From sequence record MT661596.1: DNA of 64,000 nucleotides, one strand, 5' to 3'. Shown here piece after piece: positions 7,966-62,362 of this stretch. The position numbers were made by a program, and so were the translations under genes. The stretch's first letter is position 1; each line of letters opens with the position of its first letter. Under the pieces are notes generated by a model. That model searched no databases. It saw nothing but the letters and a program-made list of their open reading frames with translations, and was not told the DNA's origin.

Positions 7966-9516
7966 ATGGGTGAAGCAGTTAAAGACACATCCCGTAAAAT
8001 GTCTATGGTGTTATACACCGATGGTGGGTGTAAACCTAGTCGTGGGATGGGTGGCTGGGGAGTCCATGGCTACACTTATCCCGTTGATGATAGCGAAGAT
8101 AAACGTAAGAAGAAGAAACCAGCTAAGGATGTTCCTTCTACGACAGGATACATTCAAAAGAATGACACTGATTTAGCTACTAGAGAAGTAGTACGCCCAG
8201 AAATGTATTATGACGCCTTCGGTGGATTCCCTGGAGAAGTCACTAACAACATAGCAGAGTTAACATCTACCATCAACGGCATCAAATTAGCCATTGAAGA
8301 AAATGTTAACTCTCTACAAGTTTGGAGTGATTCCAAATATGTTGGTGACGGATTGACAAAGTATCTTAATAAATGGATTAAGAATAACTGGGTTAAATCC
8401 GATGGTGGTGAAGTTGCTAATAAAGAACTCTGGGTTGAACTTAATAAAACATTACAGGATGCTAAATCCAATGGTCTTGACTTCCGCATCGACTGGGTAA
8501 AAGGTCATGATGGTGATTACGGAAATACCATGGCAGATTACATGGCTACCCGTGGCGTTATATTAAGTCGACAAGGAGACTCTAAACCCTACATCACTAA
8601 AACACCTGCTAGCGATTATGAGAAATACACGACGGATAAACCAAAGTTTATTTCGCATTCTCGTTGGTATTTTAACCTAAATGAAGACAATGCATTAATT
8701 GGTAAAAATGAGCATGGGTTCTACGAGTATTATTTTGGACACCCAAGCAAAACCGATTCCGACCAAGTCTATCTCGGGCAGGCACTTGCTGATACAGCGT
8801 ATAGCGTGGTTTGGTTGAAAGAACCTGAACCTTGCTTAGATTTGATTCATGCAAGAACAGCACAGATTGCAGAAAATGCATTTGGTAATCTCTTTATTGG
8901 TCGTTTGGACAATATCTATAATCGCTTTAACCACAAAGAGATTATGGATTACGGTGGACAGTTACTCACTAGAGCCGGTCCCCGCGATAACGACATCATA
9001 AATTGTACTAACTCATTGATTGTCCGTGAGTCCAACCCACCAAGAATTTCTTACCGTGCGGTTGAAAACTTAAAGATGTTAAATGAGTTCTTGTATAAAT
9101 GTATTAAAGGTGAGACAAGTAACCTTGTTACATTCATTGATATTACAGATAAAATCTATGATGAGGTTACTGACAAGAAAGGTAAAGTTAAACTTGAGTT
9201 AAACAAGAAGATTAAGCAGACAACTCGTGTTCTTAAGGTGAAAGCAAATTGCGCGTTCATTGGTAAAGATGTTGATGTTGATGTAACATGCACATTTGGA
9301 TTGGATATTCCTATTCGAAACACACTTAACGGGTTGACCGCCTCTAATCCAAAAGTTTACTTATTCATGGTTAAAGAATCTGATATCGCATTCCGGTATG
9401 GCACTATTGTGACTTCAGATGACGGTTATTCTATCATGGCTAATGTCTATGCTAACTTACGTATTTTGAGTAAGGGCGATTTAGAAAAGGCAGAGGCGAG
9501 TAAGAAAGCTAAGTAA
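7966..9516 (+). CDS. rnhA: ribonuclease HI with long C-terminal extension
   Basis: RNase H motifs LYTDGGC, TNNIAEL, VWSDSKY, NKELW, WVKGH..GN.MAD..A. Confidence 0.93.
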   Translation: MGEAVKDTSRKMSMVLYTDGGCKPSRGMGGWGVHGYTYPVDDSEDKRKKKKPAKDVPSTTGYIQKNDTDLATREVVRPEMYYDAFGGFPGEVTNNIAELTSTINGIKLAIEENVNSLQVWSDSKYVGDGLTKYLNKWIKNNWVKSDGGEVANKELWVELNKTLQDAKSNGLDFRIDWVKGHDGDYGNTMADYMATRGVILSRQGDSKPYITKTPASDYEKYTTDKPKFISHSRWYFNLNEDNALIGKNEHGFYEYYFGHPSKTDSDQVYLGQALADTAYSVVWLKEPEPCLDLIHARTAQIAENAFGNLFIGRLDNIYNRFNHKEIMDYGGQLLTRAGPRDNDIINCTNSLIVRESNPPRISYRAVENLKMLNEFLYKCIKGETSNLVTFIDITDKIYDEVTDKKGKVKLELNKKIKQTTRVLKVKANCAFIGKDVDVDVTCTFGLDIPIRNTLNGLTASNPKVYLFMVKESDIAFRYGTIVTSDDGYSIMANVYANLRILSKGDLEKAEASKKAK

Positions 9517-10449: not shown

Positions 10450-11850
10450 ATGTCAAGCATTATTCAGTTTGGTGAGTTCGTTGAACGTTCTGCTCCTATC
10501 CGCCCATTTCTTAATGTTGGTGCTGGTTTTGATATCCCAACAGGGTCTTACAAACTTGGCAAACACGGAGAGTCTATTTTAAATGGCGGTCTTGCGCCAT
10601 TCACAGCAATCGTTGGTAAAGGGAACACTTTTAAAACAGCTATTGCTTTATTCTGGATGATGCGAGTCATCCAGCGTTACGGTAACTCTAACGCATTACA
10701 CTACGATACAGAGTGTACATTTAGTCCAGACCGTATTAGTAACATTATTGACAGTATGCGTACCGGTGATATGGATGTCGACGCACTGATGGATACAGGA
10801 CGTGTATTTCTTACCGATGACTCCCGTATTAAAGGTAATAAGTGGTTTAAAAACACCATCCAAGATTATGCTGCGATGAAGAAAAAAGACCGTAAGGTCA
10901 TGGGTACGTTACCGTTCGTTGATAACAAAGGTAACTTTATTCCTTTCATGCAACCCACTGTTAATATCGGCGACTCTATGTCAGAAATGAAGTTTGATGA
11001 CTTAGAAGCAAACTACGCTAAGATGGAGATTGGTAAGGGCGAAATGCAAACCGAAGCTATGCGCGTGTCGAACGCAAAGCGTATGCTTATCGAAAAGATG
11101 CAAGGTTATTGTAATGCCGGCGCTATTTATGCAATTGTTACAGCTCACTTGGGTAAAGAGCTTAACATGGATGGTAAACCACAAGAGAAGAAAACCACCT
11201 TCATGAAACAGGGTGATAAAATCTCTAAAGTTCCTACTCAGATTCTTGGGCTACCTAATTCCGTATGGGAAATCTCTACAGGGTCTCCATTGATTCACCG
11301 TGAGTCTAAAGAGTGGTTGTACCCTAACGGTAATGATGTTGATACAAAAGGTAACCCTGATTTAATTACACTTATTGCTAAAAACTTGCGCGGTAAGAAC
11401 GGACCATCTGGTGTTCCTTTTGAATTTGTTATGTCACAGTCTCAAGGTTTGCTGGCGTCACTAACTGAATTCAACCATATCAAAAACTTTGGTCGTTATG
11501 GTTTAGGTGGCAATGACCGTAATTACTATGTTGAGTTATGCCCTGATGTGAAACTTATGCGAACAACTATCCGTGGTAAAATTGATGAACACGCAGAACT
11601 TCGTCGTGCTCTGGAAATCACCATGGAAATGTGTCAGATGACTTTCCTATGGCACAACCGTGACCCTAAATATAACATCACCCCTCTTGAACTTCGTGAA
11701 GGTCTTGAGAAGAAAGGTTATAAATGGGACCAGTTACTCAATACTCGCGGTTGGTGGTGCTACAATGAAGATGCCCACGAAAAACCATTCTTAAGTACCA
11801 TGGACTTACTTCGTATGTATCATGGCGAATATCACCCGTACTGGCTGTAA
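10450..11850 (+). CDS. uvsX: UvsX/RecA-like recombinase
   Basis: Walker A GKGNTFKT (UvsX-type FK[ST]), YDTE, GDSM, IVTAHL. Confidence 0.9.
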   Translation: MSSIIQFGEFVERSAPIRPFLNVGAGFDIPTGSYKLGKHGESILNGGLAPFTAIVGKGNTFKTAIALFWMMRVIQRYGNSNALHYDTECTFSPDRISNIIDSMRTGDMDVDALMDTGRVFLTDDSRIKGNKWFKNTIQDYAAMKKKDRKVMGTLPFVDNKGNFIPFMQPTVNIGDSMSEMKFDDLEANYAKMEIGKGEMQTEAMRVSNAKRMLIEKMQGYCNAGAIYAIVTAHLGKELNMDGKPQEKKTTFMKQGDKISKVPTQILGLPNSVWEISTGSPLIHRESKEWLYPNGNDVDTKGNPDLITLIAKNLRGKNGPSGVPFEFVMSQSQGLLASLTEFNHIKNFGRYGLGGNDRNYYVELCPDVKLMRTTIRGKIDEHAELRRALEITMEMCQMTFLWHNRDPKYNITPLELREGLEKKGYKWDQLLNTRGWWCYNEDAHEKPFLSTMDLLRMYHGEYHPYWL

Positions 11851-11859
11851 TGTTTAAAT

Positions 11860-11888
11860 GGAGGGGTTCGCCTCTCCTATTTATGCGG
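11860..11888 (+). terminator. hairpin terminator with TTTATGCG tail
   Basis: ggagggg-ttcg-cctctcc followed by tatttatgcgg. Confidence 0.75.
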
Positions 11889-11922: not shown

Positions 11923-12339
11923 ATGATTACTAAAGAGTTTAGAATCGTAGTTTCGAGCGTTAAAGGTTTTAATGATAAAGCTCGGTTACAACACGCGGTG
12001 AACTCATTGTTAGGCGATATATTTGCCATGAATGAGGAAACCACCTCTGACGACGACGAGATGATTGATGATTCTAAAATCCTTGTTATGGTTAATGGAG
12101 AACGTAATACCGCAGCAACGATGTTAGAAGATATCATTCCCGTTACTATAGACACCGAAATTATTAAAGTCGACTGGTCTAAAGGTAAGAAAGCCTTTTA
12201 TGATAACTGCTCTGTCCTTGGCGGTCGTGCAACACACGCTATTGTGTTCTGGGACGACAAAGATGAAGGTCAACGCAGTTTAATCAAAGCATGTCTAGAG
12301 AATGGCGCTAGAGTTCGTTTGTACCCCTCAGCTGTGTAG
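11923..12339 (+). CDS. degenerate SLOG/DUF2493-like protein
   Basis: RIVVSSVKGFND...VDWSKGKKA...AIVFWDDKDEGQRSLI parallels the SLOG domain of the next gene. Confidence 0.55.
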   Translation: MITKEFRIVVSSVKGFNDKARLQHAVNSLLGDIFAMNEETTSDDDEMIDDSKILVMVNGERNTAATMLEDIIPVTIDTEIIKVDWSKGKKAFYDNCSVLGGRATHAIVFWDDKDEGQRSLIKACLENGARVRLYPSAV

Positions 12340-13179
12340 GTGAGCACCATGATAAAGTCCGAAAGTAATATCAATGTATTTAACGCTAACACAACACATG
12401 TTACTTGCACTGTTAATTGCCAAGGACACATGGGTAGAGGTATTGCGTTATACATGCGTAAACGCGTCCCTGGTTTATACGAAGCTTATAAGCGTCAGGT
12501 AGAGTCTGGCGCATTAACAGTTGATAAGTTATGGATATATAAGAACTCATCTCCAGCGGTGCTGTGCTTCCCCACAAAAGATAAAACATGGGAGCCTAGC
12601 AAGTTGGAATGGGTGGAGAGCAATCTTAAAAAGTTACGTGATAACTATAAACAAATGGGTATAACTAGCATCGCTATACCGCCACTTGGTTGCTCTAATG
12701 GTAACCTTGAATGGGGTGATGTTAGAAAGCTTATTTATGATATTTTAAGCGATTGTGACCTAGAGGTTCATATCTGTCTTGGTGAACAAGGTATTCACCG
12801 TAAACTAAGAGTGCTTGTTGCAGGTAGTCGAACTATCACAAACTACAAGTTAACAGAAAACGCCATCGAATTAGCATTCTCTGGATTAAAACTAACAAAA
12901 GCAGAACGTGAAGATGTTGTGTTCATATCTGGTCTAGCGCTTGATGGCCCAGATAACCACGTTATTACTTATTGTCGTAAAAACGGTAATCGGTTAGAGG
13001 GTTACCCAGCCAAATGGAATGAACTCGGTAAACGTGCTGGTATGGTTCGTAATGCTGAGATGGCTAAGGTTATTAATTATGGTGTTGTTGTCTATGATGG
13101 TAAATCCAAAGGCACGAAGAACATGATTGAGTTGTTAAACAAACATGATATAGACAACTTTATTTACATAACCGATTAA
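12340..13179 (+). CDS. Macro domain (DarG/TARG1-like) fused to SLOG/DUF2493 domain
   Basis: TVNCQGHMGRGIA, FPTK, IAIPPLGCSNGNLEW (macro); VLVAGSRT, ISGLALDG, AGMVRNAEMA, YDGKSKGTKNMI (SLOG). Confidence 0.88.
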   Translation: MSTMIKSESNINVFNANTTHVTCTVNCQGHMGRGIALYMRKRVPGLYEAYKRQVESGALTVDKLWIYKNSSPAVLCFPTKDKTWEPSKLEWVESNLKKLRDNYKQMGITSIAIPPLGCSNGNLEWGDVRKLIYDILSDCDLEVHICLGEQGIHRKLRVLVAGSRTITNYKLTENAIELAFSGLKLTKAEREDVVFISGLALDGPDNHVITYCRKNGNRLEGYPAKWNELGKRAGMVRNAEMAKVINYGVVVYDGKSKGTKNMIELLNKHDIDNFIYITD

Positions 13180-13192
13180 TGAGGATGACTCG

Positions 13193-13861
13193 ATGAACCA
13201 AGCAAGACAAAAAACACAAGAGTACGTAATTAGTCGTATCTCTGAAATCATTCCTGGCAGTAAAAATAAAGCCATTTACGAAGACTTCTTCTCGCGTCTT
13301 AGCGATGAACAATTCGATAAGCTTATGGCACGCATGGAAGAAGATAATGAATGCTTTCCTTTCTACAATCCTAATTTCGCTAAAACACGTATAGACCTAG
13401 AGCATGTATTTAAACTTCTTGAAAAAGAAGGGGGTAAGGCAACTGAAAAGGTTTGGGTAACATCCCCATCAACAGGTGTTCGCCATTTAACACCTCTAGC
13501 TTACCCAATTCTTTATACGTCTATTCGTATACAGCAACAAAAACTACCAAAGAAAATGTCTATACCAAAAGACAATAACCATATTGACGATTTGACCAAC
13601 CAACCAACAACAGAGTCTAAAGGGTCTAGTTTGAGTTATCCTGAGATACAGATACTCTATGCAATGGGTCTGGACGTCAGTATGGAAGAGCTAATAAAAG
13701 CCCGTGGTGGTGATGAGGTTACTTTCCGTAATTACAATAATGAAATCATCAATACAGGCTCTGTTATGATGTCGGCTATCAGCTCCGGTCAGACCAAGGT
13801 TAAGTCAACAAAAACCGTGTCAACTATTCTAAAAGCAATGCACTTGGATAATAACCTATAG
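13193..13861 (+). CDS. virion RNA polymerase beta subunit, C-terminal part (phiKZ gp149-like)
   Basis: QQKLPKK...DDLTNQPTTESKGSSLSYPEIQILYAMG...EELIKARGGD aligns with the RpoB C-terminus ([25 protein letters not shown]). Confidence 0.88.
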   Translation: MNQARQKTQEYVISRISEIIPGSKNKAIYEDFFSRLSDEQFDKLMARMEEDNECFPFYNPNFAKTRIDLEHVFKLLEKEGGKATEKVWVTSPSTGVRHLTPLAYPILYTSIRIQQQKLPKKMSIPKDNNHIDDLTNQPTTESKGSSLSYPEIQILYAMGLDVSMEELIKARGGDEVTFRNYNNEIINTGSVMMSAISSGQTKVKSTKTVSTILKAMHLDNNL

Positions 13862-35743: not shown

Positions 35744-36463
35744 ATGAGCGCCGATTCCACTAACTCGGAGACTAATGACCTATTAGAGTTTCTTGAGTTA
35801 TTCCCGCCTGCCATTAAAAACAATACGAAAATCTTAGGTAATGGTGTTGATTTGAATTACACATTTCATATTAGCACCAACCCTAAGATTAAGTTATTCA
35901 CACCTTCTATATCCCAACGGACAATGAATAAAGAAGACCGTAGTGTACCGCGTGTATCTACTGCTAAAACACTGAATGGGTGTATTGGTGGTTATGTCGC
36001 ATTACTCTATGACTTCGAAGCAATGGATGGTAAGGATTGGAATGGTGGTTGGAAGATTTATGCGTTACCGTATGTTCACGCACTACAACCTAATAAAAAC
36101 ATTTTAGGTGATGCAGAACAAACAGAAGAAGTTTGGTTGGTGGGATATAACAAGTCACATCGTACATACCCGGCACTTATAGCGGGCGAAATGTTTGTGA
36201 TGAGCATGGCTATCGTTGTAGACCCTGATGTGAAATACCATCGTAAAACGGTAGTAACAATGTATGTACGTGTTGCTGACGGTTATCAACTTCCCTTAAA
36301 TAAGCAAGTTGTATTGCGTTCTGGTTATTACCATCTCACCTACAATGATTATTACACAGCTGTTGATGTCCGTAATCCACAGGACATTATTGTTAGACCT
36401 GTAAGTGCAGGCGAATACAATACCAAAAAGAAAATTGGGTCAGCTAACCTAAGTTACCAATAA
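35744..36463 (+). CDS. putative ADP-ribosyltransferase-fold protein
   Basis: FHIS / RVSTA / QTEEVWL motifs in ART strand order; AAGGAG RBS. Confidence 0.45.
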   Translation: MSADSTNSETNDLLEFLELFPPAIKNNTKILGNGVDLNYTFHISTNPKIKLFTPSISQRTMNKEDRSVPRVSTAKTLNGCIGGYVALLYDFEAMDGKDWNGGWKIYALPYVHALQPNKNILGDAEQTEEVWLVGYNKSHRTYPALIAGEMFVMSMAIVVDPDVKYHRKTVVTMYVRVADGYQLPLNKQVVLRSGYYHLTYNDYYTAVDVRNPQDIIVRPVSAGEYNTKKKIGSANLSYQ

Positions 36464-61859: not shown

Positions 61860-62362
61860 TAGTTCCTCCTTGTCAAGAGGTAACGTGGATAATGAGTATC
61901 AAGTTGATTGTTTAGATGTCTTTCAATCAACCGCACTAATCCAATGGATAGTTGCAGTGACTCACGTAATCCTAAGACTGTTATTAATCTGTGTACCATC
62001 GGGCAATTAATAATGACACCAACAACCGAAGGCTAAAGAGATGCCATTGCATCACATGAGTAATCCCAGCAGTCATGTCACCCTATATCCAACCTACAGG
62101 TGATATGCAAAGACTTAAAGGTCTCCTACATTAGGGTCGCTGTGAGGTTACAATATCAAAGGGTGGATATCCTGGTGTTGTTATGAACACCGGTGAATAG
62201 AATGGGTTTATCCTCTTTATAGGTTAGTGCCCACATAACTGTCTTGGTCGTTTGATACGATGACAACCTTTAACTGCGGGGGACTAAAAGTAAGTTACTT
62301 GCACTAACTTGCGAGCAGTTAACTAATTCAAGACGATACACGTATGGTTGTTGGCTGGCTGG
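61860..62362 (+). ncRNA. putative large structured ncRNA (~500 nt)
   Basis: no ORF in the track; many helices including the long-range pair 62019-62027/62346-62354; embedded in the tRNA array. Confidence 0.7.

Follow-up and report, generated by a model that had tools for sequence, protein, structure and literature searches.

The stretch of DNA analyzed here (64,000 nucleotides of sequence record MT661596.1; hereinafter, the window) contains, on the + strand at positions 11923–13179, two adjacent open reading frames (ORFs), ORF1 and ORF2, whose products combine a macrodomain with two members of the SLOG superfamily. Multiple lines of evidence lead us to favor, as a somewhat better than even proposition, the view that the two ORFs constitute a conserved module of nucleus-forming jumbo phages related to Erwinia phage RAY, and that this module most likely shields the phage DNA from DarT-type ADP-ribosylation, with the SLOG domain of ORF2 acting as a tether to single-stranded DNA (ssDNA) and ORF1 as a partner that itself does not bind DNA. 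The segment 11000–14500 of the window matches Proteus phage 10 (MT661596.1, with window position 1 corresponding to position 62001 of the record) at 100% identity; this is a 223-kb phage of Proteus mirabilis, and its GenBank record labels all genes of the ORF1/ORF2 region 'hypothetical protein'. An earlier interpretation of the window made from the letters alone (hereinafter, the sequence-only reading) had located both ORFs at positions that we confirm, and had proposed a candidate counter-defense pair in which an ADP-ribose eraser would be combined with ligand binding, with a decayed SLOG protein as a possible binding or regulatory subunit. This interpretation is supported in part: the eraser half is strongly supported, whereas 'decayed' turns out to be the wrong label for ORF1.

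The N-terminal half of ORF2 (residues 1–148, window positions 12349–12792, + strand) is, on the combined strength of sequence and modeled structure, a macrodomain of the DarG2/AdfM type, with a fold nearest to DarG among the macrodomain classes. The Pfam Macro model recognizes it at 35 bits (cut-off 22 bits) and the PHROG macro family phrog_335 at 4e-36, and the DarG models of NCBIfam and PADLOC match at 1e-36 and 1.1e-40, respectively, both spanning the macro part only. The closest sequences in the PDB are the DarG macrodomains of Mycobacterium tuberculosis and Thermus aquaticus (1.6e-22 for 5M3I, and 6.9e-21), and the FPTK motif of ORF2, with Lys77 (codon at 12577–12579), aligns on the FPTK of the DarG structures 5M3I and 5M31; the catalytic lysine of this motif is K80 in T. 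aquaticus DarG. The AlphaFold2 (AF2) model of ORF2 (predicted local distance difference test score, pLDDT, 90.7) superimposes in a Foldseek comparison on the T. aquaticus DarG–ADP-ribose complex 5M3E with a root-mean-square deviation of 1.4 Å and TMt of 0.88 (1.4–1.6 Å across the DarG structures), and in VIA-align comparisons the macro part reaches a Z-score of 23.1 with M. tuberculosis DarG, compared to 17–18 for TARG1-like chains and 2AFC and 16.7 for Poa1p. Furthermore, the macrodomain shares 34% identity (E 1e-21) with AdfM, the gp104 protein of phage phiKZ, with the TVN motif that includes Asn23 (codon at 12415–12417) aligned on the TVN of gp104, and both Asn23 and the FPTK lysine are invariant in nine relatives of ORF2. 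The claim of a DarG/TARG1-type macrodomain that retains FPTK is borne out. A full-length DarG, by contrast, is ruled out: the NCBIfam model is matched at positions 7–145 of 338 only and, because the macro part alone matches, the score of 126.9 bits falls below the 250-bit equivalog cut-off. Unlike the bacterial DarG proteins of T. aquaticus and M. tuberculosis (PDB 5M31, 5M3E, and 5M3I), which are the best matches of this half of ORF2 in both sequence and structure, ORF2 has no C-terminal DarT-binding domain, a SLOG domain being found there instead, and no cognate toxin: the neighbors are a UvsX-like gene, ORF1, and a subunit of the virion RNA polymerase (vRNAP), with no adjacent darT.

The class to which the macrodomain belongs has recently acquired a defined function in phages. 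AdfM of phiKZ, a DarG2-like macrodomain, undergoes import into the phage nucleus and removes DarT2-deposited ADP-ribose from DNA; it rescues DarT2 toxicity, is needed on DarTG2 hosts, and has homologs in about half of the chimalliviruses (PMC13309987). The Tk.4 protein of T4 is likewise an AdfM that removes DarT2 ADP-ribose and protects the phage (PMC13716836), so that AdfM proteins countering DarTG2 were demonstrated in 2026 in two phages (PMC13309987, PMC13716836). Like these proteins, ORF2 is a phage DarG2-type macrodomain without the DarT-binding C-terminal domain, and phiKZ, too, is a chimallivirus. The AdfM proteins of phiKZ and T4, however, are stand-alone proteins of about 160 amino acids, whereas in ORF2 the macrodomain is fused to a SLOG domain of the YAcAr family, follows a SLOG paralog, and lies within a UvsX–vRNAP block; SLOG domains are not mentioned in either AdfM paper (PMC13309987, PMC13716836). 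Homology, with the catalytic lysine and asparagine both conserved and with AdfM proven in phiKZ and T4, strongly supports the eraser part of the sequence-only reading: the ORF2 macrodomain is predicted to hydrolyze ADP-ribose groups attached by DarT2 toxins to the thymidines of ssDNA. In this respect, the macro half of ORF2 is a further member of a known, recently proven anti-defense family, and the Macro–SLOG fusion as a type had already been catalogued.

The C-terminal half of ORF2 (residues 153–276 plus the stop codon, window positions 12805–13179, + strand) is a basic (isoelectric point, pI, 9.0) SLOG domain of the YAcAr family (PF10686, formerly DUF2493). The score with the Pfam model, 24.3 bits (E 2.8e-5), falls just short of the 28.2-bit gathering threshold; the PHROG SLOG families phrog_289 and phrog_11222 match at 2e-23 and 4.8e-24, respectively, and the domain is 39% identical to the C-terminal half of RAY gp153. 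The domain contains all four YAcAr loop motifs (GSR, SGxAxGxD, RN, and DGxSxGT), none of which varies across the alignment of the family; among them are G159-S160-R161, G231-M-V-R234-N235, and D250-G-K-S-K-G-T256, so that the prediction of an intact SLOG/DUF2493 domain in this half is upheld by PHROG, motifs, and fold alike. The SLOG matches of the ORF2 model are led by YpsA (Z 12.0), Streptococcus pneumoniae DprA (Z 11.5, 23% identity), and ShosA (Z 11.4; the DprA and ShosA identities range from 21 to 23%), with the ThsA SLOG absent from the top 50 structural matches in VIA-align. The DprA/Smf proteins and the DprA-like antitoxin ShosA (PDB 3UQZ, 4LJK, and 8ZVA), with which ORF2 shares the Rossmannoid SLOG fold as well as G-S-R and M-x-R-N, are ssDNA- and RecA-binding dimers (PMC12961424). 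The motifs proposed as ssDNA-binding signatures of DprA, G-[STA]-R and [FLY]-x-x-R-[ND] or A-M-x-R-[ND], hold ssDNA, by a base and a phosphate, in the Helicobacter pylori protein (PMC3950713); the GSR of ORF2 fits the first of these signatures, and GMVRN differs by a single mismatch from the A-M-x-R-[ND] variant of the second. ORF2 differs from DprA and ShosA in having neither the SAM nor the winged-helix extension. SLOG domains have been reported in about 31% of jumbo phages, and YAcAr domains are elsewhere fused to nucleases and helicases (PMC9503650); one such fusion, to an SF1B helicase, is found in HelB of phage ICP1.

ORF1 (138 amino acids, window positions 11923–12339, + strand) is, judging from profile comparison and the predicted fold, a true but strongly diverged SLOG protein that, within the SLOG superfamily, is best placed beside YAcAr as a divergent sister group. 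Neither Pfam nor PHROG produces a match for ORF1. Nevertheless, alignment of the ORF1 family profile with the YAcAr SLOG profile using hhalign gives a probability of 98.3% and an E-value of 1.8e-14 over 121 columns, and reproduces exactly the register in which the sequence-only reading had compared the two (AGSR to SSVK and GKSKGT to DKDEGQ). A phmmer search against 1.84 billion representatives retrieves three matches, one of which (E 4.3e-5) is a 136-amino-acid bona fide YAcAr protein that itself matches PF10686 at 5e-14; orthologs of ORF1 reach PF10686 at 2–4e-4. The AF2 model (pLDDT 86.9; predicted template modeling score, pTM, 0.82) contains five strands in the order E-H-E-H-E-H-E-H-E, and the seven best of its VIA-align matches among 48,161 chains all belong to the SLOG superfamily (Z 8.5–10.2), including ShosA (10.2), DprA (9.4, three entries), YpsA (9.4), the ThsA SLOG 7UXS (8.8), and TM1055; a Foldseek comparison of the same model with the PDB returns weak generic Rossmann matches only, with a best E-value of 6e-3. 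The neighbors of ORF1 in the ESM Atlas are viral YAcAr clusters, with scores of 0.90–0.91. The prediction of a second SLOG-like protein ahead of the Macro–SLOG fusion is thus vindicated, and a fold and a family can now be assigned to the hitherto unannotated ORF1/RAY gp151 family.

What distinguishes ORF1 from other SLOG proteins is the thorough remodeling of the loops. None of the YAcAr motifs GSR, SGxAxGxD, RN, and DGxSxGT is present, and both DprA ssDNA signature motifs are likewise missing; the corresponding positions are occupied by S11-S12-V13-K14, N58-G59-E60 (NGE..T), A91-F-Y-D-N-C96, and D111-D-K-D-E-G116. The protein is acidic (pI 4.9, compared to 9.0 for the ORF2 SLOG domain) and contains a conserved acidic insert at residues 38–50; given the loss of the arginine-containing motifs together with this acidity, binding of nucleic acid appears unlikely. 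The sequence-only reading had described these motifs as decayed, a description that does not hold. The ratio of nonsynonymous to synonymous substitution rates (dN/dS) is 0.10–0.15 for unsaturated pairs, compared to 0.08 for the macro gene, and among five phages, in which the protein is 48–57% identical between clades, the family has 57 invariant columns that include the replaced loop residues. ORF1 is 53% identical to RAY gp151; besides the Proteus phage 10 protein, its family has members in about 19 Erwinia phage records, in Salmonella phage SA002, and in a few metagenomic sequences, and the gene occupies the same position in each of the 21 phage records in which it occurs. ORF1 is a selected acidic paralog with a conserved pocket of its own, and the earlier suggestion of a subunit with a binding or regulatory role is a reasonable one. 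Several other candidate relationships of ORF1 were rejected: a BLASTP match to ORF2 (17 residues, in a different register, E 0.013) is superseded by the profile comparison; a match of the family profile to HAD phosphatases among the PDB sequences (E about 0.03) is non-significant and reflects general Rossmannoid resemblance; and a large-library match to P0037, a 1985-amino-acid S-layer/dockerin repeat protein, is a repeat-driven chance match. A search of IMG/VR for loci related to ORF1 found nothing, and a word-index protein search with ORF1 yielded two relatives only.

The source phage encodes, outside the window (139328–140890 of MT661596.1), a 714-amino-acid open frame homologous to chimallin, the shell protein of the phage nucleus (24% identity to phiKZ gp54, E 2.3e-24), and the ORF1/ORF2 region is syntenic with that of the nucleus-forming Erwinia phage RAY and other Agricanvirus phages. 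Because of this homolog and this synteny, Proteus phage 10 is placed, by comparison of sequences, among the nucleus-forming jumbo phages (chimalliviruses). The gene order common to these phages (Erwinia Agricanvirus, Salmonella SA002, and pEa_SNUABM_37) is RNase H, hypothetical genes, UvsX, the ORF1 homolog, Macro, in some cases a middle domain (hereinafter, Mid), SLOG, and the vRNAP beta gene, and the ORF1 homolog lies 7–17 nucleotides upstream of the macro gene in those relatives for which coordinates were listed or inspected. The sequence-only reading had described the pair as inserted between recA and the gene for a vRNAP beta subunit. The flanking UvsX-like and vRNAP beta genes are indeed there; an insertion it is not, because the arrangement is ancestral in the RAY-like phages. 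Macro and SLOG homologs are adjacent in 59 phage records, those of phiEco32-like podophages included.

In the relatives, the macro and SLOG parts are separated by a middle domain of about 150 amino acids, and the parts of the module are variously joined. Macro–Mid–SLOG occurs as a single protein of about 425 amino acids in pEa_SNUABM_37 and in several metagenomic jumbo-phage contigs; in RAY, Macro (gp152) and Mid–SLOG (gp153) are separate genes; in AH06, an additional small gene lies between the Macro and Mid–SLOG genes; and Salmonella phage SA002 (MN445183, 110433–112309) shows a tandem partial duplication of the module, in which a Macro–Mid gene is followed by the C-terminal third of Macro plus Mid and SLOG; this duplication either is genuine or arose during assembly of the sequence. 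Proteus phage 10, like two metagenomic sequences closely related to it, lacks Mid, and it is to the loss of this domain by Proteus phage 10 that the direct Macro–SLOG fusion of ORF2 is due. The middle domain corresponds to phrog_652, with representatives in 537 phage records; Pfam does not recognize it, and a Macro–Mid–SLOG profile compared with the PDB gave no sequence match for this part. ESM Atlas scores of 0.84–0.86 to N-glycosidase/Gp30.3/NADAR clusters, a single GenBank label of 'putative N-glycosidase', and a weak but colinear hhalign match to T4 gp30.3 (E 7.6e-4, probability 25%) point to a probable NADAR/T4 Gp30.3-like domain. T4 Gp30.3 is AdfN, an eraser that counters DarTG1 (PMC11825919), and the middle domain may represent an unannotated family of DNA-guanine ADP-ribose erasers; if it is indeed NADAR-like, the ancestral module would have combined a SLOG domain with erasers directed at the two DarT chemistries. 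In Erwinia phage Hena1, a stand-alone homolog of the middle domain is flanked by genes for RNA ligase/polynucleotide kinase on one side and for Sir2 on the other, a neighborhood of the NAD/RNA-repair type that is unlike those of the jumbo phages.

With respect to the mechanism, we propose that the basic YAcAr SLOG domain of ORF2 is a DprA/YpsA-like nucleotide-pocket domain that would most likely tether the eraser to, or guide it toward, ssDNA (which may be modified) at intermediates of replication or recombination. DarT2 acts on ssDNA, and this, together with the DprA-like motifs and the basic pI of the domain, the fact that DprA and ShosA are the nearest structures with appreciable identity, the HelB fusion, and the constant recombinase neighbor in the clade, is the reason why we favor ssDNA or nucleotide tethering; a tethering role would also fit the fixed site next to the UvsX recombinase gene. 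DprA and ShosA bind RecA, and ORF2 is encoded near a RecA-like gene. ORF1, in turn, would be a non-DNA-binding partner, either forming a heterodimer with the SLOG domain or acting as an adaptor or regulator, and such a heteromeric partner or adaptor appears to be the most economical reading of a SLOG protein in which neither ssDNA motif is retained. A more specific version, to which we attach little confidence, is that the ORF2 SLOG domain and the acidic ORF1 form a DprA-like heterodimer that recruits the AdfM eraser and, in relatives, also the NADAR-type eraser, to UvsX-coated ssDNA in the phage nucleus. Should this be the case, these phages would possess a repair pathway for ADP-ribosylated DNA in which recombination is coupled to the removal of lesions and ORF1 is the subunit that mimics DNA or acts as an adaptor.

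Several observations weigh against the tethering proposal. The AdfM of phiKZ functions without any SLOG domain. The pTM of the ORF2 model (0.56) means that a fixed packing of the two domains is not predicted. The Pfam DprA model (DNA_processg_A) finds no match in ORF2, and the GSR/RN pocket is the general nucleotide pocket of the SLOG superfamily, which could equally hold a small molecule derived from ADP-ribose (ADPR); because of this generality, the motifs do not discriminate between a DNA base and such a ligand. Our literature search found no experimental work on phage YAcAr/DUF2493 SLOG domains, and no YAcAr domain is known to bind DNA. In the phiEco32-like phages, moreover, the Macro–SLOG pair lies beside a sigma factor gene rather than UvsX, so that the link to recombination is clade-specific at best.

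The generality of the nucleotide pocket leads directly to the alternative that fares best, although we regard it as unlikely, namely that the ORF2 SLOG domain, and perhaps ORF1, bind ADPR-derived immune signals such as the gcADPR and His-ADPR of Thoeris as a sponge or sensor, so that the module would counter signaling immunity besides, or instead of, DNA ADP-ribosylation. The nucleotide pocket motifs of ORF2 are intact, and the ThsA effector of type I Thoeris senses 3'cADPR through a SLOG domain (PDB 7UXS) that belongs to the same superfamily, has its pocket at the same loops, and matches the ORF1 model at a Z of 8.8. Furthermore, Iyer, Burroughs, Aravind, and co-workers, who in 2021–22 described viral Macro–SLOG (YAcAr) fusions and Macro/NADAR/SLOG neighborhoods in jumbo phages by computational analysis, interpreted such sets as processing or toggling soluble ADPR signals and predicted that the viral YpsA-clade SLOG domains, which they noted in fusions with Macro, NADAR, and Nudix domains, serve in the sensing or processing of cADPR-like molecules (PMC7824862, PMC9503650). 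These architectures share with ORF2 the same domain pairing, the occurrence in jumbo phages, and the NADAR-type association; the motif-remodeled ORF1 paralog, the link to AdfM and DarT2, and the fixed UvsX neighborhood are not part of those reports. However, ThsA is a host effector sensor rather than a phage protein and is a weaker structural match to ORF1 and ORF2 than DprA, YpsA, and ShosA; for ORF2, it is these three that appear among the 50 best structural matches, with the ThsA SLOG outside that range. The DarG2 macrodomain class has been described by Morgan et al. as acting on DNA ADP-ribosylation only; a one-to-one fusion of a sponge to an enzyme would be an unusual design; ORF1 is acidic and has lost the pocket motifs; and no phage SLOG sponge was found in our literature search. 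Given the DprA ssDNA motifs that the SLOG domain keeps, targeting to ssDNA appears at least as likely for it as the role of a sponge.

It is also conceivable, if improbable, that the SLOG domain is itself an enzyme that, as in the case of LOG, cleaves an N-glycosidic bond, the substrate being either the ADP-ribose that has been released or a derivative of ADPR, such that the Macro and SLOG domains process two bonds of a single substrate in turn and ORF1 is an inactive paralog. A division of labor of this kind has been proposed for the viral Macro/NADAR/SLOG/Nudix sets (PMC9503650), and the LOG-family chains 1RCU and 2IZ5 are among the structural matches. Yet the LOG signature PGGxGTxxE (PMC3950713) is missing, the equivalent DGKSKGTKNM of ORF2 lacking a glutamate at the corresponding place, and the closest structures, YpsA, DprA, and ShosA, are non-catalytic binders.

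Slightly more improbable still is the possibility that the module serves the NAD/ADP-ribose housekeeping of the phage itself, either by clearing Appr-1''-p or Appr>p produced in RNA repair or by reversing the action of a phage transferase. The names given to homologs in PHROG and GenBank ('phosphatase', 'Appr-1-p processing'), the toggle proposal for jumbo phages (PMC7824862), and the RNA ligase, polynucleotide kinase, and Sir2 genes that adjoin the Mid homolog in Hena1 are in line with such a role. The macrodomain, however, groups with DarG and TARG1 and not with MacroD or the Appr-1''-p phosphatases of the Poa1p kind (Z 22–23 for DarG vs. 16.7 for Poa1p), and the characterized phage homologs of the ORF2 macrodomain act against DarT2. 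An ORF at window positions 35744–36463 (+ strand), 23 kb from the module, is a candidate for an ADP-ribosyltransferase fold, and a Pfam search with a threshold of E ≤ 0.1 finds no match in it; should it prove to encode a genuine transferase, there could be a connection with ADP-ribosylation performed by the phage itself. Finally, that ORF1 is merely a decaying SLOG duplicate without a function of its own, as the loss of the canonical loop motifs and the lack of Pfam or PHROG matches might suggest, is very improbable, being contradicted by the purifying dN/dS, the invariant columns, the confidently predicted fold, and the fixed position of the gene.

Returning to the layout of the locus, the module is flanked, on the same + strand, by the gene for a UvsX/RecA-like recombinase upstream (10450–11850; phrog_97, UvsX-like recombinase, 7.7e-48), which has 75% nucleotide identity to the 'putative UvsX' genes of Erwinia phages and occupies the same place in all related phages, and by the vRNAP beta subunit fragment downstream (13193–13861; phrog_3233, RNA polymerase beta subunit, 3.2e-87), to which RAY gp154, 'vRNAP beta subunit 2', corresponds at the syntenic place. 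A GC-rich hairpin, GGAGGGGTTCGCCTCTCC then TATTTATG (11860–11885, + strand), which a scan identifies as terminator-like by consensus match only, separates the UvsX-like gene from ORF1. In a promoter scan, sigma-70-like sites were no more frequent than in shuffled sequence. As for the junction between the two genes of the module, the TAG stop codon of ORF1 overlaps an AGGTGA Shine-Dalgarno-like site that is followed by a 5-nucleotide spacer and the ATG of ORF2 (12337–12348 up to the ATG, + strand). The ATG at 12349 is supported as the start by an MIxSE N-terminus in all nine aligned relatives and by the GenBank coding sequence, which begins at record position 74349 (window 12349). The spacer is thus 9 nucleotides long, with AGGTGA 5 nucleotides upstream of the start codon, and the 'zero spacing' reported in the sequence-only reading resulted from the choice of a GTG at 12340 as the ORF2 start. 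Given the 9-nucleotide gap and the overlap of AGGTGA with the ORF1 stop, the genes do not abut, and to judge from this arrangement are probably translationally coupled. Farther upstream (window 7966–9516, + strand; phrog_3265, 1e-163), a protein of 516 amino acids contains an RNase H domain within roughly residues 80–210 and a long C-terminal extension; the RAY-like phages conserve it in the corresponding position.

The new elements brought out by the present analysis are the conserved, remodeled acidic SLOG paralog ORF1 and the plastic UvsX-linked block to which it belongs. In the jumbo-phage clade that includes Proteus phage 10, the Erwinia Agricanvirus phages, and Salmonella SA002, the predicted eraser is not a lone enzyme: the macrodomain belongs to a conserved block in which it is joined by a recombinase, a remodeled SLOG protein, a SLOG domain, and a domain that is probably NADAR-like, and these parts have been repeatedly fused, split, duplicated, or deleted. 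These natural 'domain-swap' variants offer material for asking whether the YAcAr SLOG domains that are so common in phages sense or sponge ADPR signals or bind ssDNA in the manner of DprA. Furthermore, these findings could allow better prediction of those jumbo phages that are resistant to DarT-type defenses.

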